From Thalia democratica (lineage: Eukaryota): a stretch of DNA of 64,000 bases. Below are positions 16,126-51,000 of the stretch, piece after piece; position 1 is the stretch's first letter; each line of letters begins with the position of its first letter. The notes below the pieces were generated by a model that made no database searches, was not told where the DNA came from, and was given only the letters and a program-made list of their open reading frames with translations. The position numbers and the translations under genes were made by a program. The stretch is from positions 23,374,001-23,438,000 of the forward strand of contig OZ241830.1 in assembly GCA_965202585.1 (NCBI GenBank), in the 5' to 3' direction.

Positions 16126-16554
16126 ATGAACTTCTTAGTAATTCTCACATTTTGCTCGAGCTGCTTATTTGTCAGTTGTGCCGGTTTAAGATGCTACGAA
16201 GGCAGAAACATAGGGTTCGAATCGAATGAAACCATCGAAGAGTGCAGCGACCCTTACATGGACTTTTGTGTAACTGCCACATTCAGGAACGGCGAAGTGC
16301 CAAAGTACACGTGCGGGGAGCAGGAGTTTTGCACGACGAAACGCTGCTACAACACCGACTACTGCAAGGAACCGGGCACCTTCGAACGTGACTACCTCAG
16401 AAAGGACAACGTGAAGTTCACGATGACTTGCTGCGACACGGATTTGTGCAACGATGAAAATATTCCAAGTTCAGCAAAATCTCTTGACAAAATTTGTTTC
16501 AGCTGTTTATTTTACATAAGTCTTTTTATTTGTTCGTATTTTGTTATATTTTAA
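16126..16554 (+). CDS. Ly6/uPAR (three-finger, LU domain) protein, predicted GPI-anchored, copy 1, 142 aa, intronless
   Basis: Hydrophobic signal peptide ending CAG|LRCYE; 10 Cys ending in the canonical CCDTDLCN; small-residue omega region (SSA) and a hydrophobic C-terminal tail without a cytoplasmic segment; AATAAA at 16676. Confidence 0.95.
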   Translation: MNFLVILTFCSSCLFVSCAGLRCYEGRNIGFESNETIEECSDPYMDFCVTATFRNGEVPKYTCGEQEFCTTKRCYNTDYCKEPGTFERDYLRKDNVKFTMTCCDTDLCNDENIPSSAKSLDKICFSCLFYISLFICSYFVIF

Positions 16555-20888: not shown

Positions 20889-21314
20889 ATGAAGTTATTA
20901 CTAATTCTCACATTTTGTTCAACCTATTTATTTGTCAGTTGTGCTGGTTTGAAGTGCTATGAAGCCAGCAACATAGATTTATATCCATTAAACTTAACGA
21001 TCGAAGAATGTATATCGGATTCCTCGTATTTCTGCGCAACTTCTACTATCAGAAACGGCGAAGTTCCATATCAAACGTGTGGAGATGAAGAGTTTTGTAC
21101 ATCAAAAGGTTGTATTGATTCCATATTTTGTACAAATACAGGAACCTACGAACATAATTATCCTGGATATCAAAATGTGAAATTCACAATCACTTGTTGT
21201 GATACAGATTTGTGCAACGTCGAAAGTTCAGCCAAAACTTTATACAGAATTAGTTTTGTATTTTATTTTACATGTGTGTTTTTGTTATTTCTATTCAATT
21301 TATTTGTAAATTAA
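20889..21314 (+). CDS. Ly6/uPAR three-finger protein, predicted GPI-anchored, copy 2, 141 aa, intronless
   Basis: Same architecture as copy 1: signal peptide, LKCYE, 10 Cys, CCDTDLCN, SSA omega region, hydrophobic tail; AATAAA at 21387. Confidence 0.95.
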   Translation: MKLLLILTFCSTYLFVSCAGLKCYEASNIDLYPLNLTIEECISDSSYFCATSTIRNGEVPYQTCGDEEFCTSKGCIDSIFCTNTGTYEHNYPGYQNVKFTITCCDTDLCNVESSAKTLYRISFVFYFTCVFLLFLFNLFVN

Positions 21315-27210: not shown

Positions 27211-27648
27211 ATGAGATTTTCACTAACTCTCATATTTTGTTCGAGCTACTTGTTTGTTAATTGTGTCGGTTTAAAGTGCGTTGAGTTCAGAGATGTAGAT
27301 ATTTCCCCATCAAATGTAACCATTGAAGAATGCGAACCGGAATTCTCGGACTTTTGTGCAACTGCTACAATTGTAAACGGTGCAGTTCCATACTTCACGT
27401 GTGGGGATCAAGAGTTTTGTACATCAAAAGGTTGCAGGGATTCTATGTACTGTACGAAACCAGGAACCTACGAACATGGCTATCAAGGATTGAGTAACGT
27501 GAAATTCACAATCACTTGTTGCGACACAGACTTGTGCAACTTTGAAAATAGCTTAAGTTCAACCAAAGTAATAAACAAAATTAGTTTAAACTCTTTGTTT
27601 TACATTAGTGCTTTATTGTATTTGTCTTTTACTAGTTTTCAAACTTAG
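27211..27648 (+). CDS. Ly6/uPAR three-finger protein, predicted GPI-anchored, copy 3, 145 aa, intronless
   Basis: Signal peptide, LKCVE, 10 Cys, CCDTDLCN, Ser-rich omega region, hydrophobic tail; AATAAA at 27689. Confidence 0.95.
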   Translation: MRFSLTLIFCSSYLFVNCVGLKCVEFRDVDISPSNVTIEECEPEFSDFCATATIVNGAVPYFTCGDQEFCTSKGCRDSMYCTKPGTYEHGYQGLSNVKFTITCCDTDLCNFENSLSSTKVINKISLNSLFYISALLYLSFTSFQT

Positions 27649-30513: not shown

Positions 30514-32537
30514 ATTAATATCTTAGAATAAAAACTATAGTTTTTAGTGAACCCTTTGTATAAGTTTCATTAAAAAATAATACATTAAGTTATGTTTTAA
30601 ATAGAATTTGATTAAACCTTTTAACTGTGTTGAATACGTTTTAAAGTGTAGAAAATTTTCAGAAAGTTCTGTTTTGATAAAACTTATAACTGATTCATAA
30701 AAGAAAAGCTCTTTAAAAAATAGCTCTTATAACAATCAGCAACGAAAAGGTTACTATTATGTAATTATAAATCTAAAAGAAAACGATAAATAAAAAGAAA
30801 AAAAAGAGTTTAAATATCTTTTTGTAAATAATTTTGTTTCAAAAGAGTAGTAATATTTAAACTTAAAACAATCAAACTAAATACTTTTTTTTAAGACTAC
30901 ATTTTTCTACTATCTATTTAAAAGTTAAGCATCAAACTTTATTTGTAAAAGTTTAATTAGTTTTATAAAGTTGAGTACTGTAAACCTTAGAATTTAATTA
31001 AAACAAATTTAAGCCATTTATCAGAAAACTTAAACAACTTTTAACATGTTGATTTAACTTTGATATCGGTAATCGCATTTATATTGCAAAGATAAATATC
31101 AACATTACTTAAAATCATATATCCTGTTTGGTAAGTCTTTCAAAGTCAGATTAACAAAATTTAAAAGTTGTTAAATATTGCTTCGCACGCTTACATTAAT
31201 GTGCGGTTAAAAAAAGACTTTAATTATATTCATAGGTGTTAGATTTATTTGTTTTGTTTTTTATTAAAAATTTTCTTAGCCTTTTCAAAGACTTTTAAAG
31301 GATATTGAGATTTCAAACTGACATAATAAATTAAAATCGAGTAAAACTTAAAGTCAACAAGCTTAGATGTAAAAAGAATAGTTTGAAAAGGGTGACTGTT
31401 ATGTTTAAAAAGAATGTTATTTTACAGAAAGTTAAATTAAAAAACATAAAAAGAATTAATGAACTTTTTTACTTGCAAAACTTTTTGAAGTACTAACTTT
31501 CATTTAATTAAAACTGGTCAATTAAAGTATATTTCTAACGCGCGATAAAGCAGTTTCTGTAATTACCAGCCTTAGTACTTAAACAGAGTGTGCCATTGAA
31601 GGTTAAAATTGTTCTACAAGTTACCATTGTAGTTAATATGTAAGTTCAAAAATGGGTATTAAAACTAAAGTAAAACAAATATTTTATACTTTAAAACATG
31701 TTTTCTAATATGTAGTTAACTTTATTAAAGGTTTTAATTCATACACTTAAATTTTGCACTAACGTACTGCCATACAAAATAATATTTTAAAATTTAAAAT
31801 TATAGCAATCATGATAGAGAGTAAAGAGGTTTTAAACTACAGTTTTTCATAACTTAGCTGCTTTTATATTAGGCCGTAACTATTACACACCGTGCAGAAA
31901 TCACAATTGCATATTTAAGTTTAAAGCAGCACATTATGAAATTTAGTTTGGATTTTTCAGGTAATTAAAAATTTGCTTTCAATACTTACTATTAGATATG
32001 GGTGATAGCTTAATATAAATTAGCTAAAATATTTCTACCAAAGATTTATTTCAAAACCTACTTTCAATTTTTGAATATCATGTTTTTTTGAGTAACAAAA
32101 TTGTCATAAAAAGTTTCAAGGACTAAAAGTTAATTAGTAAAACTTGTTTTTGCCTGATGATGTCTTTTTTTTTATTAAAAAAAAAAATTTCTTTAAAATT
32201 CTTTTGTTTTTAACCTTTAATATAAAAACTTACTTAATACTTTTTGCTTTCGTCAAATTTAATTTTTAATTATTCCTCAAAATGTTTAACGAAAAAAAGT
32301 ATGTACATATTATTTCACTAAACAGGTCTACTTCTAAATTGCTAATATAAATTTCCAATTTCTAATGTATAAATAATACTCGACCAGTTGTTTTAGTTAC
32401 AGTTTATTCAAAATTCAAACACGTTAAAAATTAATGAAAAGCAAACACAAGTAATAAATTTTCGCAGTTTAAGTTGCTAGAAAACAGAAATTAAAAAAAA
32501 AATTTGCACTATTTCAATTTCACCATGCTAACGCACA

Positions 32538-32584
32538 CTAAGCCTCTCTCCATCTTCCTAGGTAGCTTCTCAACCCGCCGTAAC
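32538..32584 (-). CDS. Last coding exon of the TSR gene (SYGGLRSYLGRWREA*)
   Basis: TTTTTGCAG acceptor, phase 1, GC-richer than its flanks, TAG at 32540-32538. Confidence 0.8.
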
Positions 32585-35500
32585 CTGCAAAAATGGCTTT
32601 GTTTAGTTTAACGCTTGTTATTTTCCAATCGTAGTAAACGTTTTTTTTATAGTTACGTACTTGTGTTACAGTTTTTTAGCTTTAAAATTGCAATACAAAT
32701 TAAACTTTGTCATTAATTTTATAAGTTTTTTATTACTAGTTAGTATTTTTCTAAGATATAAGTAATTTTTGACTTGTATATTTTATTCTAACTGAAATTG
32801 ATTTTTATATTTTTATATTTTATAATACTATTATACAAACTAACAGGCTACTCTGTCAAAAAACTTTTTGTTGATCTACGTACTTTTGTCAATTGAATAA
32901 TTTCCAAGACGGCTTAAGGCCTTGAGTTTGAAGACTTTTAAAAGTTATATTTACATTTTTTTGTTGAATATATCTAAAAACGTATATCTTCTATTTATAA
33001 GAAATCTTTTAAAAGCAGGGTTTCTAAACGTGGGCGATATTCTCTATCGGGGCTGACAACTATTACAACTAATAAGGGGCAGTAAATTAAATGGGTGAAC
33101 TAAGTCAAAAGGCAATATGTGTTAAAAACGCGTGATTATTTTCCAGTTTCTGCCAAGCGGGCAATTATGAAAACGATTTTTAGAAATCCTGTTTTAGAAA
33201 CCGCCCTAAGTCAAAAACTCTAGTACACAAAAAAGCTAACTTTGTACGCAGGTGGCCTTGACTTCTGTGAACATGCCGTTGCCCTGGCAGGTGATGACGT
33301 TGAAGCCGGACATCTCGTAGCCGAAGCCGCAGTTGAGCACAAGGGAATCCCCTTGGGTGAAAACCCTGTTCTCGGGGCTGACCATGTTCAGCGAGCGCAA
33401 GTCAGGAATCTGGCAGGTGACTGTGAAAAAAAAAAAAAATTGTGTTTCAATTTTTTTTTTATTTGACTATGATGTTTTCTTATTGCTATAAATGTTTATA
33501 AATGTATTCAAAAACTTTGTATACCTAATTTTTTGCGTCTCACCAAAATTTGGTGAGTTTTTATAAAAAACGTTAACAATAAAGTTGTTTGATAATTTTA
33601 ACCTACCTAAGTTTTCGTCAAACTTTTGAAGTTTTAAAAGCTTGAGTACAGTAAGAAAGTATTACATCCTGATTTAAAGCTAGTATATATGTTTTTACAA
33701 AATGTTTTCCTTGAGTTTTACTTTAAAACAAACCTAACACATCTCGAAAAATTTTCAACAAAGACACGAACTTTACTTGCTTGCAAATAGTTTATAAATA
33801 TTAATTAATATAAGATCAAGTCGTTTATTTTTGCTTAACGCTAACCTTCTGTTCTGCAAGCGACGCCGGTGTCGCATGGCACCTTCCTGACGAGCTCCTG
33901 CATGCACATTCCCTCCAGGCACGCCCTCCTCTGTATCCTCTCACCGACTCCGCAGGTCACACTGCAGCTTTCCATGGTCCACTCCCCGTACACGGCAGCT
34001 CTCATGCACTCCCTCACCTGGCATGGCACCGTCCTCGTCATCGGCTCGGTGCAAGCTCCCTGCATGCACATCCTCTGGTCAATGCGCATGCCCTCGCCGC
34101 ACGTTGCGCTGCAAGTTCCCACTACCCACTCGCTCATGACGACCTGCACCTGGCAAGCCCTCCCGCTGTCGCACGGTTGGGTTCTTACCAGGGACTCGGT
34201 GCACGTTCCGGAGACGCACACCCTCCTGTCGGTCCTGGTGCCGCTTCCGCACGAGGCGCTGCAAGTTCCGAGGAGCCACTCGCTGTAGGTGGTGCAGTAC
34301 TCGGTCGCCTGGCAAGGGGTGGACCTGGCCAAGTCTTCGGTGCAAATGCCGGCCAAGCAAGCCCTCTGGTCGACTCTGACTCCGGCGCCGCAGGTGGCGC
34401 TGCAAGTTCCGATGACCCAGTCTCCGTACCTGACGCACTCGACACCGCTGTTGCAAGGCAGTGATCTAGTGAGGTCTTCGGTGCACATGCCGGCGAGGCA
34501 AGCCCTCTGGTCGACCCTCATTCCAGTTCCGCACGACGCGCTGCATTCTCCAATTACCCACTCGCCGTACACGACGCAGGTGACGCCGCTGTCGCAAGGA
34601 ATCGACCTCTGGAGGCTCTCCATGCAGTTTCCTTGCATGCACCTTCTGGTGTCGACCCTGACTCCCGATCCGCAAGTGGCGCTGCACGAACCGACGACCC
34701 ACGGGCCGTAGACGACACATTGCACGCCGCTGTCGCAAGGAGACGATCTCATGAGGTCTTCGGTGCACACTCCTGACAGGCACTGTCTGCTGTCGACCCT
34801 GACACCGGTTCCGCAAGTCGCGCTGCAAGATCCCATCACCCAGTTTCCGTACTCGACGCACTCGACACCGCTGTTGCACGGGCTAGTTCTCACGAGGTCT
34901 TCAGTGCAGAAACCTTGCAAGCACTGCCTCCTGTCGACCCTCATTCCGGTTCCACAAGTTGCGCTGCAAGCACCAATCATCCACTCTCCGTAGACGATGC
35001 AGGTGACGCCGCTGTCGCAGTCTCTAGTTCTGACCAACGGTTCGGTGCAAGTTCCCGCAACGCACTGCCTGCGGTCGACTCTTTGTCCGGCGCCGCAAGT
35101 AGCGCTGCAAGATCCGATCATCCAATCGCTGTAGACGGTGCAGACAACTCCGCTTTCGCAAGGTACAGCCCTTTCGAGAGCTTCAGTGCAGACACCGGCA
35201 AGGCACACTCTGGTGTCGACCCTGGTTCCCGAGCCGCACGAAGCGTCGCAGGTTCCGATCATCCACTCGCCGTAGACGACGCAAACCCTTCCGCTGTTGC
35301 ATGGAACCGACCTTTGCAAGGCTTCGGTACACCTTCCTTGTACGCACGTTCTAGTGTCCATGCGCAGCCCTTGACCGCAAGTAGCGCTGCATGATCCGAT
35401 AGTCCATCTGCTGTACACCACGCACTCGTCGTTGACGCAAGGTACTGATCTCATAAGGTCTTCGGTGCAAGTTCCCTGCAAGCAGAGTCTTCTGTCCATT

Positions 35501-38500
35501 CTTGTTCCTTCGCCACAAGTGACGCTGCAAGATCCGATCATCCAGTCGGAGTAGACCGGGCAGAGCTCTGCCTCGCAAGAGCTCATTCTGATGAGGTCGT
35601 CGGTGCAAAAACCTTGAACACATGTTCTTGTGTCGGTTCGGACTCCGGAACCGCAAGTAGCACTGCATGCTCCAATGGTCCAATCGCTGTAGACAACACA
35701 GACTGGTCCTTCACAAGGAGAAGATCTCATAAGGTCTTCAGTGCACGTACCAGCAAGACATTGTCTTGTATCAACTCTTACTCCAGTTCCGCAAGTAGCG
35801 CTGCAAGATCCAATAACCCATTGACCGTAGACAACACAAGCGGGTCGTTCACAAGGGCTTTGTCTTTCAAGAGCTTCAGTGCAAACACCAGCCAAGCACA
35901 TTCTTCTGTCAACTTGTACTCCTGCACCGCAAGTAGCACTACATGATCCAATCATCCATTGGCCGTAGACTACACATTCTACACCTGAGTCACAAGGATT
36001 AGTTCTCATGAGGTCTTCAGTACACCTACCAGAAAGACACCTTCTTCTTTCAACTATTACCCCAGTTCCGCAAGTAGCGCTACATGTTCCGACAACCCAT
36101 TCACTGTAGACGATGCAAGCGGGTCGTTCACAAGGGCTTGTTCTTTCAAGAGCTTCAGTACAGACACCAGCCAGGCACATTCTTCTGTCAACTTGTACTC
36201 CTGCACCGCAACTAACACTACATGTTCCAATCATCCATTGTCCGTAGACTACACATTCTACACCTGAGTCACAAGGACTAGTTCTCATGAGGTCTTCAGT
36301 GCACGTACCAGAAAGACACCTTCTTCTTTCAACTATTACCCCAGTTCCGCAAGTAGCGCTACATGTTCCGACAACCCATTCACTGTAGACAATGCAAGCG
36401 GGTCGTTGACAAGGGCTTGTTCTTTCAAGAGCTTCAGTACAGACACCAGCCAGGCACATTCTTCTGTCAACTTGAACTCCTGCACCGCAACTAACACTAC
36501 ATGTTCCAATCATCCATTCGCCGTAGACTGTACATACTACCCCGGAATCACAAGGAGATGTTCTAAAGAGATCTTCAGTGCAGACACCGGAAAGACATTT
36601 TCTACTATCCCGTCTAAAACCTGTTCCACAGGAAGCAGAACATACTCCTATTTCCCATTGGCTGTACACTACACATTCGGGACCGTCGCAAGGAATTGAT
36701 CTTTCAAGAGCTTCAGTACAGACACCAGCCAAGCACATTCTTCTGTCGACTCTCACTCCTGCACCGCAACTGACACTACATGTTCCAATCATCCAATCGC
36801 CGTAGACTGTACATACTACCCCGGAATCACAAGGAGATGTTCTAAAGAGATCTTCAGTGCAGACACCGGAAAGACATTTTCTACTATCCCGTCTAAAACC
36901 TGTTCCACAGGAAGCAGAACATACTCCTATTTCCCATTCGCTGTACACTACACATGCGGGACTATCGCAAGAAATTGATCTTTCAAGAGCTTCAGTACAT
37001 ACACCAGCTAAGCACATTCTTCTGTCGACTCTTATTCCTGCACCACAAGTGGAACTACACGTTCCAATCATCCATTCGCCGTAGACTGTACATACTACCC
37101 CAGAATCACAAGGAGATGTTCTAAAGAGATCTTCAGTACAGACACCGGAAACACATCTTCTTGTATCAAGTCTCATTCCTGTTCCGCATGAAGCGCTACA
37201 TTTTCCCATTGTCCAATCGCTGTACACTACACAAGCAGGAGCTTCACAAGGGCTTTGTCTTTCCAGAGCTTCAGTACAAACACCAGCTAAGCACATTCTT
37301 CTGTCGACTCTTATTCCTGCCCCACAAGTTGCACTACATGTTCCTATCATCCATTGACCGTAAACTACACATTCTACACCAGAATCACAAGGAGCTGATC
37401 TAGTAAGATCTTCTGTACAGAAACCAGAAAGACATCTTCTTGTATCAAGTCTCATTCCTGTTCCGCATGAAGCACTACACTCTCCTAGTGTCCATTGGCT
37501 GTACACTACACAAGCTGGTTGATCACAAGGCACTGCTCTTGACAAGTCCTCAGTGCAGAATCCTGACAAACACTCTCTCGAATCGTATCTCAAACCGGAG
37601 CCGCAGGTGACACTACACATGCCGATCACCCAGTCGCTGTACTTCACACAGTCTCTCCTGTTGCACGATGAAGTTCTCTCGAGAGGTTCCGTGCACACAC
37701 CCGCAAGGCAGGCCCTTGTGTCCATCCTCAAACCGTCTCCGCAGGTGGCACTGCACATGCCGATTACCCACTCGCCGTAAACTGTGCACTCGCGTCCGCC
37801 GCAAGGGGTAATTCTTTCCAAAGAATCGGTGCAAGCGCCGGCCAAGCACATCCTGGTGTCGACTCTCTGACCTTCGCCGCAGGTTACGCTGCAAGCTCCG
37901 ATCATCCACGCGCTGTAGACGACGCATGGGGGAGTCGTGCAAGATACGGTTCTCATCAAGTTCTCTGTGCATTTTCCTTGCAGGCAGGATCTGAAATCGA
38001 CTCTGATGCCTTCGCCGCATGTGACGCCGCACGAACCGATCTCCCACTCGCCGTAAACAGTGCAAGGTTCGGCCGCGCAAGGTTCTTCTCTCCTAAGAGA
38101 TTCGGTGCAGAAACCAGAAAGGCACTCTCTGGTGTCGACTCTCACGCCTGATCCGCAAGAGGCACTACAGGTGCCGATCTTCCACTTGCTGTAGTTGACG
38201 CAGGTCATCTGTTGCTCGCAAGGAACGGTTTTCTGAAGGGGCTCGGTGCAAGTGCCTGACAAGCACTCTCTCGTGTCGACTCTTGTGCTGCCGCTGCAGC
38301 TCTTTATGCAAGGTCCTTCAACCCATGGGCCGTACACGACGCAAGCAACTTCGTAGCAGGGCGTCGATCTTTCCATGGCTCCAGTGCAAGCTCCCTGAAT
38401 GCAAGATCTCATGTCGACCCTGACTCCCTCGCCGCAAGTGACACTGCACCTTCCAACGACCCAGTCGCTCACTACGGGGCAAGGCACCGATGTGCACGCC

Positions 38501-41500
38501 TCAGTTCGCATCAGAGGCTCGGTGCAGTAGCCGGACAAGCACACTCTCCTGTCGACTCTAACGCCCGAACCGCAGGTGGCGCTGCAAACTCCAACCTCCC
38601 AATCGCTGTACTTCACGCACGGTGCCATTTCGCAGACCTGCCTTCGCTCAAGAGCATCAGTGCATCTGCCTTGCAGACAAGTCCTGGTGTCGACTCTGTA
38701 TCCGCCGCCGCAGCTGGAGCTGCACATTCCAATGACCCAATCGCTGTACATGGGGCAAGGCTCGGCCTGGCAAGGCGATTCTCTCGTCAGAGGTACGTCG
38801 CACGGTCCAGTGATGCACATTCTTGTGTCAGTTCTGGTTCCGGATCCGCAAGCCGCGCTGCAAATACCGATGGTCCAGGGTCCGACTTCCATGCAGGGCT
38901 TGGACTCGCAGGGAATTTCTTGAGTGAGTGGCTCGGTGCAAAATCCAGACAAGCACTCTCTCGTGTCGGTCCTGACTCCGCCTCCGCAAGTGCAGCTGCA
39001 CTGGCCCTTCACCCACGGACCGTAGACGACGCACTCGACTCCAGTATTGCAAGGTTCGGATTTTATTAGTGGTCCGTCGCACACGCCGTTCATGCAATCC
39101 CTGTTGTAGACCATCACACCGGTTCCGCATGTTACGCTGCACTTTCCGGCCTTCCACGGACCGAGTTGGGGGCAGGCTGGCTGCTCGCAAGGGCTCGATC
39201 TTCGCAATGGCAGCACGCAGTCGCCTCTAATGCACTCTCTGGTTTCGACGACAACTCCTGAGCCGCAACTCACGCTGCAGACGCCGATCACCCATGGGCC
39301 GTACGAAGGACAAACTTTACCTTCGCAGGGCACCTCCCTCACGAGCAATGCCTCGTCGCAGTCGCCTTCCAAGCACTCTCTGGTGTCGAACTGCACGCCG
39401 GGTCCGTACTCTGCGCTGCACATTCCGATAACCCAAGGACCGTATACGGGTTCGACAGGGGCGCAGGGCGGGCACGGCATCTCGACGCAAGTGACTGTTC
39501 TCGACTCTGGGGTGCACATGCCTCTGACGCACGACCTGGTGTCGGTTCTGACGCCTGTGCCGCAAGTGACGCTGCAACGTCCCATGACCCAATCAGCATA
39601 GATGGGACCGCAGTCGCCCATGGAGCAGACCGAGCTTCTTTCGAGGGACTCGGTGCATGCGGCTTGCGAGCACTCGGCGGTGCCGGCCGACTTGCCGTAG
39701 CAGTTGATCTTGCACTGCCTCCTGTCGATCTGAACTCCGTTGCCGCACGAGACGCTGCACACTCCCAATTGCCAGTCGCCGTACTCGACGCAGATTCCCT
39801 GCGCGCACTGCTCCACCCTGGTCAAGTCCCCTGTGCAGATTCCAGACAAGCACTCCCTGGTGTCGACCCTCATTCCGGCGTTGCCGCACGACGAGCTGCA
39901 GGTTCCGAGCACCCACGGGCCGTAAACAACGCACTCGACGCCGCTGTCGCACCTCTGTACTCTGATCAGGTCCTCGGTGCAAACGCCGGACAGGCACACC
40001 CTCCTGTCGATTCTCTCGCCTACTCCGCACGACGCGCTGCAAGTTCCAATCTCCCACTTGCTGTATACCACGCAAACTTCGATCGCTCCGGTACAGGGTA
40101 CGGTTCTGGAGAGCATGGCGTTGTCGCAGCTTCCGGAGAGGCAGTCCCTAAAGTCGATTCTCTGACCGGGTCCGCATGCGGCGCTGCACATTCCCAACTT
40201 CCATTCGCCGTACGCAACGCAAACTTCAACGTCAGCAGTGCAAACGCTTGTTCTGAAAAGCTCCTCGGTGCAGTCTCCAGCTTCGCAGGTCCTGCTCTCC
40301 ACCTGGGTACCCATGCCGCAAGTGGCGCTGCAGGGCCCGACGACCCAGTCGCTGTACTTCTCGCACGCCTGCTGGTTGCAGTCCACCTTCCTCACCAGCG
40401 GCTCCCTGCAGTCGCCCGAAAGGCACTCTCTGGTGTCGACCCTGGTACCGCCGCCGCAAGCCGAGCAGCAAGTTCCGATCACCCACTCGCTGTAGACGGG
40501 GCAGGCGGCAAGCTCGCACGTCATAGATCTGGCCATGTCGCCGGTGCACGTGCCGGTGAGGCACTCCCTGGTGTCGATCCTGATGCCGAGACCGCACGAC
40601 ACGCTGCAGCGACCTTCCACCCAACGGCCGTACTCGATGCAGGCCGGCATCTCGCACGGCGTGGTTCTAATCAAGTCTTCCATGCAGTTTCCTTGAACGC
40701 AAACCCTGGTGTCGACCCTGATGCCGCTGCCGCACTCCACGCTACAGGTTCCAATCTCCCACTCGCTCACCATCGAGCAAGCTTCCATCTCGCAGTCCAT
40801 TGACTTGACCAGGGCCTCGGTGCAGACTCCCTGAAGGCACTCTCTTGTAGCGACCCTCACTCCATTGCCGCAAGTGACGCTGCATGCTCCTTCTACCCAG
40901 TCGCCGTAGACCACGCAAACGGGCCCGTCGCAGCTAACTTCCCTTACAAGCGCTTCCGTGCACATTCCCTGCAAGCACCGTCTAACGTCGATCCTCACGC
41001 CGGTTCCGCAAGCCACGCTGCACGTTCCGATCTCCCATTCGCCGTAGACGACGCAGGCTTCTTTCTCGCACGCCACCTCCCTCATCAGGTCGCCCACGCA
41101 GTTGCCCTGCAAGCACCTTCTCCTGTCGACCCTGGTTCCGGCGCCGCAGGTGACGCTGCATTCACCGATGACCCAGTCGCCGAGGACGGCGCAGTTGGTT
41201 CCCTCGCACGGCACGGTCCTGGTCAAATCTTGCGTGCAGGTTCCGGACAGGCACTGCCTCATGTCCACCTGCTTGCCGAGGCCGCACTCCGCGCTGCACG
41301 TGCCGGCCACCCACGGCCCGTACACCTCGCAGGCTTCCCTCACGCACGCCGAACTCCTCACCAGGTCCTCGGTGCACGATCCCTGCAGGCAGGTCCTGAC
41401 GTCGGTGACGACGCCCTCGCCGCAAGTCACGCTGCAGGTGCCGATCCTCCACGGCGAGTAGACGACGCACGCGGGCAGGTCGCAGATGACGGCGCGGATC

Positions 41501-44500
41501 AGCGCCTGGTTGCAGTATCCCTGGAGGCACCGCCTGGTGTCGTACCTGGACCCCATGCCGCAGGTGACGCTGCAGGGTCCCATCTCCCAATCGCTGTACA
41601 CCGGCGCTGTGTGAGGGGTGTTTGTTAATTTCACATGTTAAATAACTGTTATAAGTTTTTCCTTATACGTTATAAAATACAGTACTTGTTATAAGAGTAC
41701 ATGTTGCTTGTTTTAAAAAATGTAGTTTTAAAATTTATCTGCTTTCTTTAATAATTTTCCATTCATTAAGTTTTTCCTATGTAAGCTATAGTAGGTACTT
41801 TTTTTACAACGATATTTAAATGTATACAAGGCAAGTTAATGAATCAGTAAAATACTTATATCACAAACTGTTTTATATGTTTGAAAGTAATCGCATTTTA
41901 TTAGGTGCACTCTTCATAAAATAAGTTTTTTGTTTGAACTTCTCTATTTCTAGAAAGTTTTGGTTACAAAAAACTGTTATGCCCTTACTGTTTACCTACG
42001 TACTACTCCCAAACAAATATAACATAAGTAGTTTATTAAGCGTTTAAATGTTAATAGCATTAGTTTTAATCTAAAATGCCACTTCTAAAACAACTGCCAT
42101 CGAATAAGATAGATATTTTTAAAAATCGTAAAAACCTGTTTAAGCTACCTTAGAATCTAAAAATATAAGCTACTAAAAATTCTCAGGTTTGTTTTGTACA
42201 AATCAATTTAGTTAAACGGCTTTGATCTTATCTACTATCAAACTCATTCAAACAGTAATCACTGCAGAATCTAACTGCCGATCTAAAATACCTTCAAAGA
42301 GTACATAATATTCTAAATAATACACCTTTGATGTTTTTGCTACCAGTTAAAACTATTGAGTGCATACGGAAGCGATAAACTTAAACGGACCTATTAAATT
42401 TAAATTTGTTTTCATAAACTCTGAGTTCACATGAAGTATTGATGAAAAAGGTCATTTGGAAGAAAAAGGCCTTTACAACTTGAACTAAGACAAATAAGCA
42501 ACATAAAATAAGAAAAATATTTTAAAAGGAGTTATGTTTACCGTTTAAGACATTATTTCTTGAAAGACTTTCTAAAAGTTAATTTTCAGTATTAAATTTA
42601 AATTGCTTTTAGCTAACTTATTTTTCTCATAAAATTTTTAAGTTTAAACAGAATTTTGCTACTTGATTGGACATTCTATAATTGTTTAAAAAAGTTAATA
42701 ACCAAATAAAATTATGCTGTTTGTATTATGACACAAGTAAGCAGTAACATTTTCACGTTTTTTCTCATGATTAATTAAAAACAATTGGAGATTACTGTTT
42801 TATTTAAATAAGATAACGATAGAAAACATGTTTGACTGGTTATGATTAATGAGAATTCTATATACAGCATAGAATTTAAACACTATTTATAATTTGTTTA
42901 GCACTGTAAAACTTAATTAGATCACTCTTTATCATTTTATTATGATATTTCACACTTATTAACCCCTTTGTCAAAAAATAAATAAAATACCAAGTTTTGA
43001 AAGTATGCCAACCATTTAGGTCTGAATACTATATTCTAAGTATATCTCTGAATATTCTTAGTTCAAACTATGATATTATGTCTGCGAAAATATTTATTGA
43101 GCATTTGCACAAATGTCTTCAACAAACGATTGTATTACCTAACCAGAAGTAATAGAACAAGAAATTTTTAGTCAACGAATTTTTATTAAGTGGCGAACAA
43201 TGCACAATACGAACAGGTGCTGTTTATTTTTCTATAATTTGCTTAATGTGCGTGTCAACCGCAAAATTAGTATATTTCAATTTTCTATCGCGAGCTAACA
43301 CACACGTGCGGTTTTCGAAAAACTTAACCTGCAAAGAATTTCAGCATCGAACAAATTAAGTTTATTCATAAGTCGACGGTTAAATGCTTATGAAAAACGA
43401 ACCTTTGTAACCATTACACTTGAAAAAGTTTGAAGAACTTACCAGCGGTTTACATGGCAGTCTGCAAACGCGTAGTGGTTAGCATGTATTGCTAAGTACG
43501 CAGCACACCCAGCTTTTAATATAATACTCAAACTGTGACCGCGCATTAAATTGTAAGCAGCCTAACACTGCTACTGCCGCGTAACAAAACTTGCGGTTCG
43601 TCGGGTGCGGCTCGAATTACAATGAAAGTTTGTTAGGTACATTTGTGTGTTAGCCGACGTTTAATGTAAAAGTAATTAAAAAAAGCAATCGTTTACAAGT
43701 TTTTAAAAGTATTAGTTGAATATTTAAATCGTTTTTGGTTTTTCTTGGTTGCATGTTTTGGAAAATGGCTGTCTTCATTTTATTTTTTTTGTGTCAATTA
43801 AATAAAACATGCTTAATTCACGTTTGTCTAAATTGTTTTAAAAATATTACTCTTCATGTACTTTTTAGTATAAATTGTTTATCACGCCCTTTTTATGAAA
43901 AACATATCAGTTTATTTTCCTAAAAAATGGTTTAAACTAAAATAAATGTAAAACTTAAAGTTTGGGTATCATAATTTTTCGCACAGAAAAACTATTTTCA
44001 TAAAACATGCCGAAAAATAAGTAAGAAACAATTCAATTTAGTTATTTTAAATGATTGCTTTCTTGGGATCAAAATAGATCTTTTTTCACAAAAAGATAAC
44101 TTACTGTAATATTTATTTAGCAAGTACAAAATCTCATAAATGTAAAACAAGTCAGCTGAAATGATAAAAAGATTCAAACAAACCTCTTGGCACAGGGGCG
44201 GCAGTTGCTGGGGCGGCAGTTACTGGGGTCCGGGTGGCTGGTGCGGCTGTTGGTGCGGCTGTTGGGGCGGCGGTTGCGGGGGGAAAGGTGACCGGCATCG
44301 CAACAATTGCTGCACAAATTTAACTTTTTATTAAAACGTATATGTTGGTGGTGCAAACTACATTTTAACTTTTACTGATTTTTACTTTTTTAATTTTTTA
44401 CATTGTTTACTTAGTTCAAAACTTTATTACGATAAAATTTCTTATCACAAACAGACAAAACGAATGTAATGTATTTTAAAATATCAACGTTGATATTCAA

Positions 44501-47258
44501 AACGCTTTGTTTTATAAGCAACTTTTAAAAACTTTTATACCAAAAAGATATTAAAAGTAAATAAATGTATCTACATGTGTATATATACATGTAAACAAAA
44601 GCTTTTCTGATGATTTGGTGAGCTAGATTATCTCATAAATGAAACAATTTAAAAAAGCTTTCGGTTGTTATTTATATATATAATATGTACTTACGATTGC
44701 AAACTCCGTTTCTTGAGAAGAATCCGGGTTCGCAGACGCACCAGAACCTTCCAGAATTGGTGGCGCACTGCGAGTTAGCAGGGCACCTGGGGCATCCTCT
44801 GTTCATCGACAGTACGTAGATCGATCTCGCTGTAAAGTGAGTTAAGTGAGTTGGTTCAAGTGGTTTAGAATAAAAAGTATTAAAAAAGTTTTGTACGCTT
44901 ATTATGAAGTAATAGTCTTAAGAACATTATAACAATTTAGTTGTTTAGTCGAAACCAGTTTAGTACTTTTAAGTAAAGCTATAGAAAATAATTTATTTTA
45001 AACTAAATCTTGAAAAAATGAATTAAGCTTTTATCTTAATATTTAATATTCAAATACCAACAATGGAAGTTAAACTACTAACGTATGCAAGTGCCGGCGT
45101 TGGTCAGGAGCTGATCGTAGGGACACACGCAAACCATGTCACCGTTCAGTGCGCGGGTGAAGCATCTCGATGTGGGCAATGTGGATCTGCACGGCTCGTC
45201 GCAAGCTGTTTGAATATTATAAGTTGTCAGTTGAACATTAATATCAGAAGTAACGCACTATGTTAAAAAGAACTGTTTGAATAATGTTTTTAGTTTTTTT
45301 TAGAAGAAAAACTTTACCAACGTTATGACAATTAAATATACTTGCTCTCCTTTTCATATAACTAGAGTAAAAACATATCTTTCTATATTTTACAACAATA
45401 TATTTTTAGCGTAGAACGATAAATTAATTTTTGACTTAAGTATTTTTATAATATTTAATCTGTTATAATTAGGCTTAACATAAACTGAATACATACATTA
45501 ACTCAATTCTGCGATAAATAAATCGCAACCGTGAATAAAACTGTACTCTATTTTGAAGCATTTATGAAGGCACTCTAGTTACTGAACAAGCTAAACGTTA
45601 AGTTTAATTCTTTATTGCCGTTTAAAGTAGTATTAACTGCATACTATATGAGATAATCCTCGTATTTTTCATAACTATTTTGCTCTTTTGAACGAAAAAC
45701 TTTGAATTTATAGTTATGTATTATATTGAGACAATCAAAAGATTATAAATTTTTAATTCCGTAAAAGACGTTTTTACAAACTTAGAATAATTTTGCACTA
45801 AAATGCCTTATTACATGGAATTAGCAACTGGTAGCACATTAAAAAAATAAATGTCTAAACCAAACTACGAAAATTTGAACACCCGTTGAAAAGGGCGGAA
45901 CAACCTTACGTTGACACGCGAGTAAGTGCATTGAATTGCGCAACTTTCAATACACGGCTTAACTATTGGCGATATCGCGGCCGGTACTGGTGACAGCACT
46001 TTGTTGTTGATCAAAACAATCAGCATTGATATGTAGCCCCGAGCGTTTTTAATCCGTCTATTGCTACCGGATTACGCATATTTGCTTGCGTTTTTTATTA
46101 CAGGCAAGAATTAGATATAAATCATTATACAAATAAAATATTAAATTGAATGTTAGACGCAGGTGATATGATAAATTTTTGTTTAAAACTTTTCAAATAT
46201 ATATTAGTACACGTATTTGCTTTAAATTAAGTAATTTAAACTTGGTTAAAATTGTTCAAAAAATTCATTGTTTTATCTTTGAACATTATGGTTAAAAGTT
46301 TAACTGTAATAAAATATAAGAATTGACAAAAGCTAATGCAAATTTTACATAATTATCTACCATTATGACCCTAATAAAAGTTAATATTGTAACAAAATAA
46401 AATTATAAAGCTTCAACATTTTTAAACGAATTTTTATCATCTATTCCTTTTTAAACAACATTTAAAATGTGTAAGTTATTAAAATAACGTAAAAACTCAC
46501 CACCACAACAAACTATCATCTTAATGACCAAGTTTACGTAAAATCTATATACGTTTTATCCAAACTTGGAAGTTTACATTCAACATATATTGGTTTAACA
46601 AGCTTACTTACGGACGAAAAAATAATCATCTGAATTACTACCTGGTGGGCATATGTCTTCTGCTTCGGCGACTGGGGACGACTTATGTTTTTAAACCGGC
46701 AAATTACACTATATTTATGCAATTACTTGGACACTTTGCAAACCCTACTTGCTTGAAAATGCAGATATTAAGATGTTTACGACGTTTTAATCTTACATGC
46801 CAGTAACATAATATGAAATAAATTACGGTCGTTGGGTTTAACGATGAAATATACACTTTGTTTAGATTGAATAAGTATTAGTAAAATTGCAATATAGCGT
46901 ATAGTTTAATTTAATAGAATATTTTACAAAACAAAACGTAAAACATTACTTCTACTTAAAAAAAAAATTTTAGCCTATTCGATCAAAATTATCTTTATAA
47001 GATTAATGACAACCATATCCAGTAAATATTATGTTTATCTTTTATTTTATATTCATACCACACAAAATCATCTATATATACAGAATTTTATAAAAAAATC
47101 GGGTTATTACTGATAGCATCGAATTCAAGCAATCTAATTATAACTTTACTAACTGTTATTTTTACTTACATACGTTTAAAACTACAAAAAAAAATCAACT
47201 AACCGAGCGTTTGCAGTGCAAGGTATGCCAGAAGAAGGCATATAGAAAGTCTGCTCAT
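32538..47258 (-). CDS. Giant secreted multidomain protein (2808 aa): signal peptide - EGF - EGF - P/T/A linker - 55 x TSR - sushi/CCP - short tail
   Basis: Hand-spliced join (minus strand): 47258-47204, 45205-45083, 44829-44695, 44309-44184, 41606-33846, 33420-33241, 32584-32538. All six introns are GT-AG and phase 1. Total 8427 nt (2808 codons plus TAG) with no internal stop. AATAAA on the minus strand at 32403-32408. Confidence 0.92.
33016..33191. mobile_element. hAT-like MITE in the last intron of the TSR gene
   Basis: Terminal inverted repeats CAGGGTTTCTAAA ... TTTAGAAATCCTG (1 mismatch); no clean target-site duplication. Confidence 0.6.
33241..33420 (-). CDS. Sushi/CCP domain exon of the TSR gene
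   Basis: 180 nt, phase 1-1. VTCQIPDL...SLVLNCGFGYEMSGFNVITCQGNGMFTEVKATCV has the 4-Cys CCP pattern, with Phe replacing the usual Trp. Poly-T/CACAG acceptor, GTTAGC donor. Confidence 0.9.
33846..41606 (-). CDS. 7761-bp exon encoding 55 tandem TSR (thrombospondin type-1-like) repeats
   Basis: This is ORF 33841..41634 trimmed to its splice sites (CACACAG acceptor, GTTAGC donor). Repeats of ~46-47 aa have consensus xVY(S/G)xWxIGxCSxTCGxGxRxDxRxCLxGxCTExLxRxxxC(3-5x)C; I counted 55. Confidence 0.97.
35836..37509 (-). repeat. Higher-order 279-bp tandem array (6 units = TSRs 30-41) inside the giant exon
   Basis: Near-identical blocks recur at a 279-bp period (e.g. 35842/36121/36400; shadow ORFs at 36578 and 36857). 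The span is 1674 bp = 6 x 279. Each unit is a 47-aa plus a 46-aa TSR. Confidence 0.92.
44184..44309 (-). CDS. Pro/Thr/Ala-rich (mucin-like) linker exon of the TSR gene
   Basis: 126 nt, phase 1-1: PIVAMPVTFPPATAAPTAAPTAAPATRTPVTAAPATAAPVPR; TGTGCAG acceptor, GTTTGT donor. Confidence 0.88.
44695..44829 (-). CDS. EGF-like domain exon 2 of the TSR gene
   Basis: 135 nt, phase 1-1: ...GCPRCPANSQCATNSGRFWCVCEPGFFSRNGVCN (6 Cys, CxC.PGF); TTTACAG acceptor, GTAAGT donor. Confidence 0.9.
45083..45205 (-). CDS. EGF-like domain exon 1 of the TSR gene
   Basis: 123 nt, phase 1-1: ACDEPCRSTLPTSRCFTRALNGDMVCVCPYDQLLTNAGTCI (6 Cys); AAACAG acceptor, GTTAGT donor. Confidence 0.88.
47204..47258 (-). CDS. Signal-peptide exon of the TSR gene (MSRLSICLLLAYLALQTL)
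   Basis: ATG at 47258, hydrophobic core, phase-1 GTTAGT donor. Upstream acceptor is probably TTTCAG (exon start 47315) or TTTAAG (47288). Confidence 0.85.
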
Positions 47259-47746
47259 CTTCTATGTGGACGTAGTACAGAATAAGGTCTTAAATATAAA
47301 AAATATCTTAAGAACCTGAAACATTTTTCTAACTGATAAAAATTTGTTTATAACGATTTCTTGCACAAAACAACCTTTAATTTTTCTTTAAATCATAAAC
47401 AAAAAACAGCTTTGAAAAAAGTTACACTTTTACTTTTATGTCTGTTTTGTCATAGGATGCGATAAAAACATTTAATAATTTATAAACATTTTATTTCCAA
47501 AACCAAATATTCCCTTCAAACTATCTTGATTTTCTAAAACTTTATTGTAAACTTTGAAAACCCGTCTAATTTAAAACTATAGATTAATGACTTGATTGTG
47601 ATTAATATGCTATATAAAGCGTTCTTAAAAACTTTCATTAAATTCCTAAACCATCGAAAATCAACTTCTTTAACCCATCTCCCCTCTTTTACTTTCACAA
47701 AGTCCTTCAGAAAAAATTCTAAAGCCCGTTTAATGTAAACGCCTAC

Positions 47747-48060
47747 CTTCCACCGAGCCAAGTGCCGCTTTGTGTTTTCGGTCCTGCACCCGGCCGGATA
47801 TATACCCGCGCCGAATTCGCCCGGAGCTACCGCGACACGGGGCCTCGTACGAGCCGGCACGCCTACCAGAGACAGAAGAATCCGGTGCGCGCACGTCAGA
47901 GGAGCAAGCGGAGAAACAGAAAGGAGAGAGGTTTCGACAGAACCGTTGAAAATAGGGAGGGAGGCGGTAAAAGATTTCGAGAGAGACGGCGAGAGATGCG
48001 AGAGAGGTATGTGTATTGCGAGGCACGCGTGTGATGTTTTTCGGTTAGCTCTACGGGCGG
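47747..48060 (-). promoter_or_regulatory. GC/CpG-rich promoter and short non-coding first exon of the TSR gene
   Basis: Isolated GC-rich island. TATATAT on the minus strand at 47804-47798 in a GC context; AAG|GTAGGC donor ~50 nt downstream (exon end 47747); GA-repeat tracts at ~47915-48006. Confidence 0.65.
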
Positions 48061-51000
48061 TTTCGCGCCTAAAGTTTCTAGAAAGTATCGGAGACGTTGA
48101 TGAACGTTAGTTTTTATGAATACATATTAGTTCGGAGCCCACACCCATTTTCAAAAATTACACATGATGTTGTTTTTCATCCGGTTTTCGTCTTATTTTA
48201 GTTAGACTTTAGTAATTTAGTGTAAAACCGTATGTTGCTTGAATTTTCGACTTTTGGACGTTTGGCACAAAAATAGTACTTGTTAAATTATGTGGTATCT
48301 CGCAGTAATTACTTACTAATGTAAGTATCTACACAATAAAAGATTTCAATTACATCAAATAGCTAGTAGTTATGTAAATTACCTGACTCTATTGTCACTA
48401 AAAACTATCACAAATATCATAAAATAAAATAACTGCTTTTTTCATCCTGAAATTAAGTATATAAAAGTATCGTAAAAGCCTTTAATATAAACCCAGTAGT
48501 TAATTAAAACGTTTTTTTTTTAACTCGAAGTGAAAACTAAACTTGTAGATGACTTAAGCTTTGATTTAAAATATTTTTAGTCCAATTTAAGTTGTTAAAA
48601 GTCTGGATTGAAGTATTATAAACTAAAATGCAATTTAGCTGTCAAAAAGAAAACCATACAGAGACATAAACACCTAAAGCCGGCTATAACTGTCAGTTAA
48701 TAAAAATTATTAAGTTTAAATAAACAAATAAATACATATGTATATATATATATATATATCTATATAAATTTAAAACCCACGCCTATATGTTTAAAAGCAC
48801 AAGATGTAATGTCATTCTTGCCACAAATCTTTATCTTAACAAGGTTTTAGTCAATTTGTAATGCCTTTTTATACAAAACAAGTTTTTACATGTTGCTTGA
48901 GTATAAGACTTTTCGAAAAAAGTCTGAACTTTTCGTAAAAGTACTTGACTTAACTTGTATTGTTTTCTGTAGAAGTTAACTTCTTGTGTAGCTAGTGTTA
49001 CATGTTAATAAAAAAACTCGTAGATATTTAAATAAAAGAATTTTTTTTTCCCTAAAGTGTATTAAAAAAATACTAAAAATATAAGCAACTTTTTTTTTGT
49101 TCTACAAGTAATCATAAATTACTTATATAAAAACTTAAAAAAAAATTACTTTTACAAAGTTTTTAAAAAAAAGTTCAAAACAGTAGATAAATTTTTAGTA
49201 GACAAAAGTTTTGTTTTAAATGCTTTAGTAAAAACTTAAGTTTTTTTACACCTAGTTTGAAGTATTATAATGACTTTTACTGTCAGTTAAAGAACCCTTT
49301 TTATACTTTATACTTCGTTTTTGAAAAAACTTATATGTCAAAAACACTCATAAATAAAAATTTTGATTTTGTTTATTTAATTAAAAACTAATATTTTATT
49401 TCTAATCGTGTCATTTATATACTGTCAATGTAAAACTTTTCAACTTAACCTATGTAAAGATTAGAATAAGTCGTACTTTTTATTACGCTCTGCTATATAT
49501 TAAGTTCAAAAAGTCTTGTAAAGTATTTAAGTTTAAACAGAATTATTCGTATACTTAGATAGCCGTAGAAGTTCCTAGCTTTCTTTATCTTTAGTTTAAT
49601 ATATTCTTAAATGAAAAACAATAACTATTTTTTTAGTTGAGCTCATCAGATTGAGTAAGATTTTTAATACACGATGAATTATTTGTGATTAATGTTTTAA
49701 CACACATCTAGCTACTTGCAGCATACAAAACACATTTATCAACATTAGCCTCAAGCATTTTTGTGCTCGGCTGTTTAATTGTGTTTGGGTGGTAAGATTA
49801 ATACAGAAACATTTATAACATGTAAAAAGTAATGATTAATATCAAAACTGCCTTAAAAAAAGCTTTACGACTAAATAAAATAAGAAAAGTTAGTTCGAAT
49901 TCTTGTACGGAAAGTTATTTAAGGAAAACTACTTAGATTTTGTTTTCTGTTTGTTTGAGTAAAATTTTAAAGATAAAGTATCATGTAAGTACTTAGAAAT
50001 TTTAGTTTAATATGATATGTAACTTGCTTTGCATTCAAACTTTTTATTTTTGTGAAGACGACCTTTTTCATTAAATAATTTTTTATAAATGGTAAACCTT
50101 TATAGCATTTCATTTAAAAGAAGTTTTTATATAAGACTAGTCTCAATCGTAAAATCAAATAAAAAAAGTGTTATAACGTTTTTTTTTTACTTGTTGTGTA
50201 AGTTACGATTCGATGAACAAAAATTAAATGTTACTCTTTTTTTATATGTTACATAATCAAACTTACGATACTTTTTGAAAACAGCGGACTTTTAACTTCA
50301 AAACGGTTGTTTTAAAATGTATTTTTGTGCATTACGTAAAAACTGTGATGTGCATTTTGCACGCTACTCCCTCAAAATTTAATTTACATAGAACAAAATC
50401 AAATAACTTCACCAAACAGCGTTTTAGCGAGATAAAGATCAGGCAAGTCGTACTCGCTACTGCCACTACAAAGCTACTTTACATTCAAATTTGAATAAAT
50501 AGATGTAAGAGACAACGCCTTTACACTTTAATGAAAGTGTCAGAAAAATCCTACATTTTTATTAAAAAAGACCTTCACTTTAATGTTGTTGCAAAACAAA
50601 GGTCTTATAAATAAAATTAATTCGAAAAACAGCTTGCATTGCACTCGTTTTAATTACGACGTTAACAAAAGAGTATTTAACTTAGTTGTTCACGAGATAT
50701 AGTAAAAAGTCAGATAAAAAAATTCAATACAGAAAAAGATATCTAAAAAAAATTAAAAATAATAAAAGTTTTACGAAATTAAACTATATTACGATACGCA
50801 TTTTCAGTTAACAGTTGGAACTATATTTTCTATTTATACAAAGCACTGATATCATTAAAAAAATAACTGGTACAAAATATTAGTTCAAATTTTTCTATAA
50901 ATTACCAAAAATCAGTTTATTTTCTTTTTTATAAAATAAGTGCGCCTTTAGATAGAGCTTTTCGAAAGACTACATTTTAACAAAGTTTTATCGTAAGGAC

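Follow-up and report, generated by a model that had tools for sequence, protein, structure and literature searches.

A predicted secreted giant protein of 55 compact thrombospondin type 1 repeats, with EGF-like modules and a Sushi domain, in the pelagic tunicate Thalia democratica

What is encoded by a single 7,761-bp exon built from one repeated module, and what might such a protein do in a pelagic tunicate? The question is raised by a 64,000-nt stretch of the Thalia democratica genome (GCA_965202585.1, contig OZ241830.1, positions 23,374,001 to 23,438,000 of the forward strand), referred to as the window, in which a gene of seven exons spans positions 47258-32538 on the minus strand; all gene coordinates given here are positions in the window. 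The gene model was rebuilt directly from the sequence by reading the exon flanks and assembling the exons with a script. It matched exactly the model of a preliminary description made from the sequence alone, in which the gene had been called complete and stop-free. The coding sequence of 8,427 nt yields a protein of 2,808 amino acids (aa), and the only stop codon is the terminal one. All introns are of the GT..AG type and all junctions are in phase 1. The gene is complete, its reading frame is intact and its product is secreted.

The start codon (ATG, 47258-47256) and the signal peptide belong to exon 1 (47204-47258), which covers residues 1-18 and base 1 of codon 19 and has the splice donor G/gttagt; two codons 5′ of the ATG there is an in-frame TAG. 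Two six-cysteine EGF-like modules are encoded by exon 2 (45083-45205, phase 1/1) and exon 3 (44695-44829), a linker of ~40 residues rich in Pro, Thr and Ala by exon 4 (44184-44309), 55 tandem compact thrombospondin type 1 repeats (TSRs; residues ~148-2733) by exon 5 (33846-41606, 7,761 bp, phase 1/1), a single Sushi (complement control protein, CCP) domain by exon 6 (33241-33420), and a 15-residue hydrophilic tail with the stop codon by exon 7 (32538-32584), all on the minus strand. An AATAAA is found ~130 nt 3′ of the stop codon. There are no N runs within the gene, the sole N run of the window being at 1939-2038, far from it. Outside the gene span and an upstream island, the GC content of the window is 21-28%; the block at ~33.8-41.6 kb has 48-60% and is one minus-strand open reading frame (ORF) of 2,597 codons. 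Because the background around this ORF is 24% GC, an exon of 7,761 bp read as one frame is far beyond chance. The extra EGF pair and extra Sushi domains of a related sequence (L001, described below) were compared by tblastn with window positions 31000-49000 and revealed no hidden exons, so the gene model of the preliminary description is regarded as complete.

From its N-terminus the protein consists of the signal peptide, the two EGF-like modules, the linker, 55 TSRs, one Sushi domain and the 15-aa tail, with exon 5 contributing 2,587 of the 2,808 residues (92%). The signal peptide is typical, having a hydrophobic core followed by a T-L-A cleavage-type motif. No membrane span was detected in the mature chain using 19-residue windows (Kyte-Doolittle maximum 1.42), and the C-terminal tail is hydrophilic, in agreement with the earlier claim of a signal peptide unaccompanied by a transmembrane segment or glycosylphosphatidylinositol (GPI) tail. 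The mature protein has a mass of ~298 kDa, an isoelectric point (pI) of ~4.9 and 350 cysteines. Both N-terminal modules contain six cysteines including a C-x-C, the first with the pattern C-x3-C-x8-C-x10-C-x-C-x14-C. In Pfam the best score for exon 3 was 23.5 bits (cutoff 27) and exon 2 was unmatched; homologues of these modules gave nothing above threshold. An AlphaFold2 (AF2) model of a homologous EGF-like pair had a predicted local distance difference test score (pLDDT) of 70, and its Foldseek matches were mostly EGF proteins (NELL, Pfs25, MSP1-19) at non-significant E values (> 0.1). Because the Pfam scores were below threshold and the Foldseek matches non-significant, the modules are called EGF-like. 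The exon 4 linker is, from its composition, a possible stretch of mucin-type O-glycosylation. The Sushi domain of exon 6 was recognized by Pfam (PF00084, 31.9 bits, cutoff 20.7), with the full-length model covered from 1 to 56, and the preliminary description had likewise placed a Sushi domain after the array.

Exon 5 scored 488.9 bits with Pfam TSP_1 (PF00090; cutoff 21.6, E = 2.8e-150) in 28 separately scored stretches, and no other Pfam domain was found in it. When the exon was split on its W..G.C core, 55 repeats were obtained, mostly of 46-47 aa and joined head to tail without linkers. Both the count of 55 TSRs and their share of about 92% of the chain, as given in the preliminary description, are upheld. 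TSR groups are defined by cysteine arrangement (PMC2173040), and 50 of the 55 repeats have exactly six cysteines in register in the group-1 arrangement. The protein contains 46 O-fucosylation-type motifs C-x-x-S/T-C-x-x-G, this CSxTCG-type site being retained in 46 repeats; the N-x-S/T sequon, compared with these 46, occurs once in the 2,808 residues. The motif W-x-x-W, which is the C-mannosylation motif and forms the tryptophan ladder, is absent across all 2,808 residues, and each repeat has Y/V/L-x-x-W instead. The repeats are a compact single-Trp variant of the TSR, and the missing W-x-x-W is no bar to membership in the superfamily. With its O-fucose site kept and its C-mannosylation motif gone, this variant lends itself to asking which features are required for TSR folding.

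A structure prediction of consecutive repeats, suggested in the preliminary description, was run on TSR43-46 with an input alignment that combined 31 blocks of four repeats taken from both the window and L001. The AF2 model had a mean pLDDT of 94 and showed the three-stranded layered TSR fold, with properdin and TSP-1 TSRs as its best Foldseek matches (probability 1.00). Unusual cysteine counts were noted at ~38986-40470, where TSR9, 14, 15, 16 and 19 have 7, 8, 7, 5 and 7 cysteines, respectively, and include a C-P-P-C; the 8-cysteine insertion of TSR14 is common to L001 and the C-P-P-C is not, and the total in the mature chain is still even (350). Of the heavily disulfide-bonded rod proposed earlier, the richness in disulfides is supported by the 350 cysteines, and the rod shape is inferred. 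A TSR is ~55 angstrom long in the crystal structure of TSP-1 (PMC2173040), and multiplying this length by 55 repeats gives an upper estimate of ~0.3 micrometre. The repeats would then form a semi-rigid rod of up to ~0.2-0.3 micrometre, held by ~165 disulfides and possibly bearing O-fucose at up to 46 C-x-x-S/T-C-x-x-G sites, and the EGF head and Sushi tail may be the ends by which the rod docks to its partners.

A relative with the same set of modules was found by searching the last 288 aa of exon 5 against 5.8 billion proteins. The closest protein, P0061 (59% identity), has two Sushi domains immediately after its TSRs and then a tail, and is recorded on 7 contigs, all of 10-20 kb. The P0061 contig analyzed, L001 (JGI 3300019144 Ga0193246_10000065; 10,897 nt, one 100-N gap), has no introns, ends in ~1.5 kb of AT-rich 3′ untranslated region (UTR), and encodes the end of a signal peptide, four EGF-like modules, a linker, a Sushi domain, at least 58 TSRs, two adjacent Sushi domains and a tail. 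In local alignments and tblastn, the second EGF pair, the first TSRs, the first C-terminal Sushi domain and the tail motif of L001 matched the window protein, at identities of 47% for EGF-like 1, 68% for EGF-like 2 and 47.5% for the Sushi domain (against the first C-terminal one of L001). Both proteins have the compact 46-aa single-Trp TSR with a short C-L-Q-G-x-C loop, in arrays of similar size, and the motif Y-G-x-L-R-S is common to exon 7 and the end of the L001 protein. L001 has more modules than the window gene: a further EGF-like pair at the N-terminus, a Sushi domain that follows the linker and precedes the array, and two Sushi domains in place of one behind it. The alignment is collinear through three of the six junctions (e2/e3, e3/e4 and e5/e6); the motif N-P-I-V, which spans the junction of exons 3 and 4, runs on unbroken in L001 and in the small protein P0090 described below, as does the TSR-to-Sushi junction in L001. 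The window gene is best read, from these comparisons, as a simpler, paralogue-type member of an L001-type family.

Genomic relatives from ENA marine metagenome assemblies, L006 and L007, contain introns at the same exon borders, L006 having the same acceptor and donor positions as exon 3. L007 is from ENA ERZ907791 (PRJEB4352, marine metagenome), a project that we take to be Tara Oceans. Because L001 is free of introns and L006 and L007 bear them, L001 was read as a spliced mRNA and the exon layout as one used in a related species; the family is thus probably transcribed and spliced likewise in a related pelagic tunicate. The preliminary description had proposed a new family for this protein on its own. 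As a lone case this did not hold up, since L001 shares the module set and the ENA fragments share the exons; no name or published description of the L001-type family was found in the literature. For eight of the first 20 repeats, including TSR14, the L001 repeat with the same index was the best or equal-best of 58, which argues that part of the array predates the split of the two genes. On L007 (193-2723), two Sushi exons are followed by a TSR exon whose frame closes after ~eight repeats, and some family members may have an array split across several exons in place of one giant exon.

How the array came to lie between a linker and a Sushi exon is suggested by a much smaller protein. The head of L001 was searched without filters against 1.84 billion representatives. 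The search returned mostly generic Sushi proteins, together with the fragments P0084, P0085, P0087, P0089 and P0090. The last, of 211 aa and carried by four RNA-seq assemblies (Logan contigs L002-L005), comprises a signal peptide, two EGF-like modules, a linker, a Sushi domain and a short tail; used as a query among the 5.8 billion proteins, it recovered no relative but itself. Its RNA-seq accessions, SRR27980846 and SRR28431405 among them, were looked for in the literature and occurred in no paper. When exon 5 was removed from the window protein, with X placed at the split codon, the remainder aligned end to end with P0090 (30% identity, E = 2e-19). That the frame without its TSR exon is collinear with a 211-aa stand-alone protein is new here. 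P0090 could derive from the ancestral small gene, or from a TSR gene as its short isoform. This end-to-end alignment and the symmetric 1/1 phase of exon 5 are most simply explained by insertion of a TSR cassette into a small gene. A phase-1/1 cassette exon would have entered a small secreted EGF-EGF-Sushi gene between its linker and Sushi exons, and the array looks like such a cassette that was amplified after insertion. Read in this way, the gene would be a clean example of exon shuffling, in which a symmetric cassette of 7.8 kb is housed in a conserved frame of small size and has been extended two repeats at a time.

The array would have grown by tandem duplication, the latest unit being 279 bp, or two repeats. 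A young sub-array at 35638-37530 (minus strand) contains 6.8 copies of this two-TSR unit and corresponds to approximately repeats 30-42; Tandem Repeats Finder (TRF) gave a period of 279 with 87% matches, and protein identity was 96-98% between repeats 34/36, 37/39 and 38/40. The ratio of nonsynonymous to synonymous substitution rates (dN/dS) was 0.08-0.59 for the 10 computable repeat pairs, indicating that the repeats are under purifying selection. GC content at third codon positions (GC3) varies along exon 5, from 0.93 in TSR1 through ~0.55 in mid-array and 0.15-0.37 in TSR30-42 to ~0.8 in TSR50-55; repeats outside the young block have 0.54-0.93. GC3 is ~0.25-0.3 through most of the L001 array, compared with 0.62 for the window gene, and the AT-rich codons of the youngest repeats are those that L001 uses through most of its array. 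The low GC3 of the young repeats possibly reflects conversion from an AT-rich paralogue, or GC-biased conversion from the exon ends. A 2026 study of 38 tunicate genomes described thaliacean genomes as large and marked by a high, distinct GC3 peak, and noted AT-richness for one of them, that of Pegea sp. (PMC13746493). A thaliacean origin of the window fits this picture and also its best full-length protein match, which is from Ciona.

Comparison with known TSR proteins was based on domain content as well as similarity. The full array, searched against the 5.8 billion proteins, retrieved no identical or near-identical protein, and the combination of TSP_1 with Sushi was present in none of the best 60 full-length matches. 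The best of these (Ciona H2Y3E3, Lingula proteins and Hydra HyTSR1) are similar at the level of the repeat only, at 25-33% identity. A scan of metagenome contigs with the first 324 aa of the array found no relative, and a search of the ESM Atlas with the L001 head gave only generic Sushi/EGF clusters with scores below 0.9. Pfam confirmed long arrays of TSRs in H2Y3E3, in HyTSR1 and in a protein from ENA. The best full-length match, Ciona intestinalis H2Y3E3 (P0001; E = 6.7e-179, 29% identity), has ~50 tandem TSRs in 2,642 aa; it differs in its standard 52-aa W-x-x-W TSRs, has no detected EGF or Sushi domain, and is a fragment-like model without a signal peptide. Its automatic name, 'Hemicentin-1', is contradicted by its architecture, and it was rejected as a hemicentin. 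Hydra HyTSR1 (Q2MCN4; P0004; 3,023 aa, 26% identity over 90% of the array) is likewise giant, secreted and made almost entirely of tandem TSRs. It differs in being cnidarian, in its standard 57-aa TSRs and in its other, non-TSR head, and Pfam finds no EGF or Sushi domain in it; the likeness lies at the level of the repeat only, and orthology is unsupported. HyTSR1, with its 48 TSRs, is a product of the granular mucous gland cells of Hydra (PMC4820225). The earlier statement that known TSR-rich proteins have fewer TSRs or different accompanying domains therefore stands for domain content and fails for number, in view of the 48 repeats of HyTSR1 and the ~50 of H2Y3E3. Many invertebrate genomes encode giant proteins with TSR arrays, and no unusual mechanism is indicated by the window gene.

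Four named families were considered and rejected on domain content. Many matches are automatically named 'SCO-spondin-like', and SCO-spondin, the protein of Reissner's fibre, resembles the window protein in being a secreted chordate glycoprotein of very large size and rich in TSRs; it assembles into an extracellular fibre. Its defining features are vWD, C8, TIL and LDLa domains, SCO repeats and a C-terminal cystine knot (PMC7333891); vWD, C8, TIL, LDLa and the cystine knot were undetected by Pfam in the window protein. The same held for the N-terminal vWA, Ig array, G2F, calcium-binding EGFs and fibulin-type C-terminus of hemicentin, and for the ADAMTS cysteine-rich and spacer module, Kunitz or PLAC domains of papilin and ADAMTS-like proteins. 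The TSRs of properdin and TSP-1 (6rus, 1lsl, 3r6b) share the layered fold, the group-1 cysteines and the CSxTCG O-fucosylation site, but properdin has 6-7 repeats and TSP-1 has 3, compared with 55 here, and their W-x-x-W ladder is reduced to Y-x-x-W. The distinction from these four families drawn in the preliminary description was borne out, their accessory domains being undetected by Pfam. TSR-repeat proteins are also present in limpet adhesive mucus (P-vulgata_6) and flatworm adhesive (Macrostomum adhesion protein 2) (PMC7333891). These resemble the window protein in being secreted, cysteine-rich TSR-repeat proteins of cohesive material, a likeness by description only, and differ in having far fewer TSRs and a cystine knot partner.

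By analogy with the poly-TSR proteins that Hydra makes in its mucous gland cells and with those of mucus and adhesives in other invertebrates, we propose that the window contains a functional gene for a secreted giant TSR glycoprotein that would, as a fibre, give structure or cohesion to material secreted by the animal, most likely to its mucous feeding filter (probability roughly 0.6). A mucus-net or fibre role, raised already in the preliminary description, is thus a reasonable possibility. A large part of the ocean's primary production passes through the mucous filters of salps and related animals. No paper was found that identifies the proteins of pelagic-tunicate mucous filters, and none that links TSR proteins to the tunicate endostyle or filter; neither TSRs nor mucus come up in the paper on the Salpa genome. 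In the oikosin paper, TSRs are reported in one house protein only, oikosin 23, which has two. A lineage-specific family of ~300-kDa poly-TSR proteins is a concrete candidate for these filter proteins. A broader version, in which giant poly-TSR proteins, the window gene included, form the backbone of thaliacean filters and arose by amplification of symmetric cassettes in small EGF/Sushi genes, with exon-skipped short isoforms alongside long ones, is speculative and we think it unlikely. Several points weigh against the proposal of a filter fibre. Neither the 5.8 billion proteins nor the metagenome contigs contained a transcript or protein from this very gene; expression and the junctions e1/e2, e4/e5 and e6/e7 are predicted; the EGF assignment is by cysteine pattern only; the ascidian endostyle transcriptome and atlas papers that were found make no mention of TSR proteins; and L001, with its extra modules, may be the orthologue of another paralogue and not of the window gene.

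The features that suggest a fibre of secreted material would also suit other extracellular places. A structural protein of the tunic (test) or of the epithelial or basement matrix, acting as a cross-linking rod in a cellulose-protein or collagenous matrix, would have the same secreted, rod-like, disulfide-rich character, and papilin, hemicentin and ADAMTS-like TSR proteins are components of matrix. A hemicentin-named gene and Sushi/EGF matrix genes, called extracellular matrix (ECM) interaction genes, were reported in ascidian endostyle RNA-seq (PMC9953650). We nevertheless hold a matrix function to be somewhat unlikely, the accessory domains of the known matrix TSR proteins being undetected in the window protein. 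The Sushi domain, common in complement-type proteins, and the structural matches to properdin TSRs could instead point to humoral recognition, with the TSR array binding and clumping microbes or particles, as proposed for properdin, Hydractinia rhamnospondin and Hydra Tsrp2; a defence role has also been proposed for TSR proteins of the cnidarian mouth region (PMC4820225). Such an agglutinating protein seems quite unlikely here, for there is no lectin, MACPF or protease module, and the 55 near-uniform repeats under length-preserving selection look structural and not like a diversified binding surface. The protein is also acidic (pI 4.9), as opposed to the basic recognition groove of TSP-1 TSRs (PMC2173040).

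Two further alternatives concern the gene and not the role of its product. Skipping of exon 5, whose 1/1 phase keeps the frame, would give an isoform of ~221 aa (signal peptide, EGF-EGF-linker-Sushi), and the skipped reading is collinear with the 211-aa P0090 of the four RNA-seq assemblies; this might be the usual product, with the giant TSR exon optional by cell or stage. However, all introns of the gene are in phase 1, hence the symmetry is not specific to exon 5, L001, read as an mRNA, contains the array, and purifying selection on the repeats implies that the long form matters, so that we judge a mainly short product very unlikely. That the gene is a silent or decaying duplicate is highly improbable: no transcript of it was found among the proteins searched, but the 8.4-kb frame is intact, all splice sites, the start context and the poly(A) signal are present, and dN/dS between repeats is below 1.

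Elsewhere in the locus, a GC-rich island of 380 bp with up to 66% GC is located at 47721-48100, ~470 bp 5′ of the ATG. It contains no convincing ORF, matches nothing in Rfam and is present only once in the window; it could represent a promoter island, a 5′ exon or some element unconnected with the gene. GC-richer islands also occur within introns, at 43441-43660 (intron 4) and at 45861-46080 and 46621-46700 (intron 1); none of these resembles the extra EGF/Sushi modules of L001, matches Rfam or recurs in the window. In the window as a whole, no rRNA, tRNA or other family known to Rfam was found. On the plus strand, three intronless paralogous ORFs of 141-145 aa are located at 16126-16554, 20889-21314 and 27211-27648. 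Each encodes a signal peptide, ~ten cysteines ending in C-C-D-T-D-L-C-N and a hydrophobic tail, and from these features they look like Ly6/uPAR three-finger proteins.

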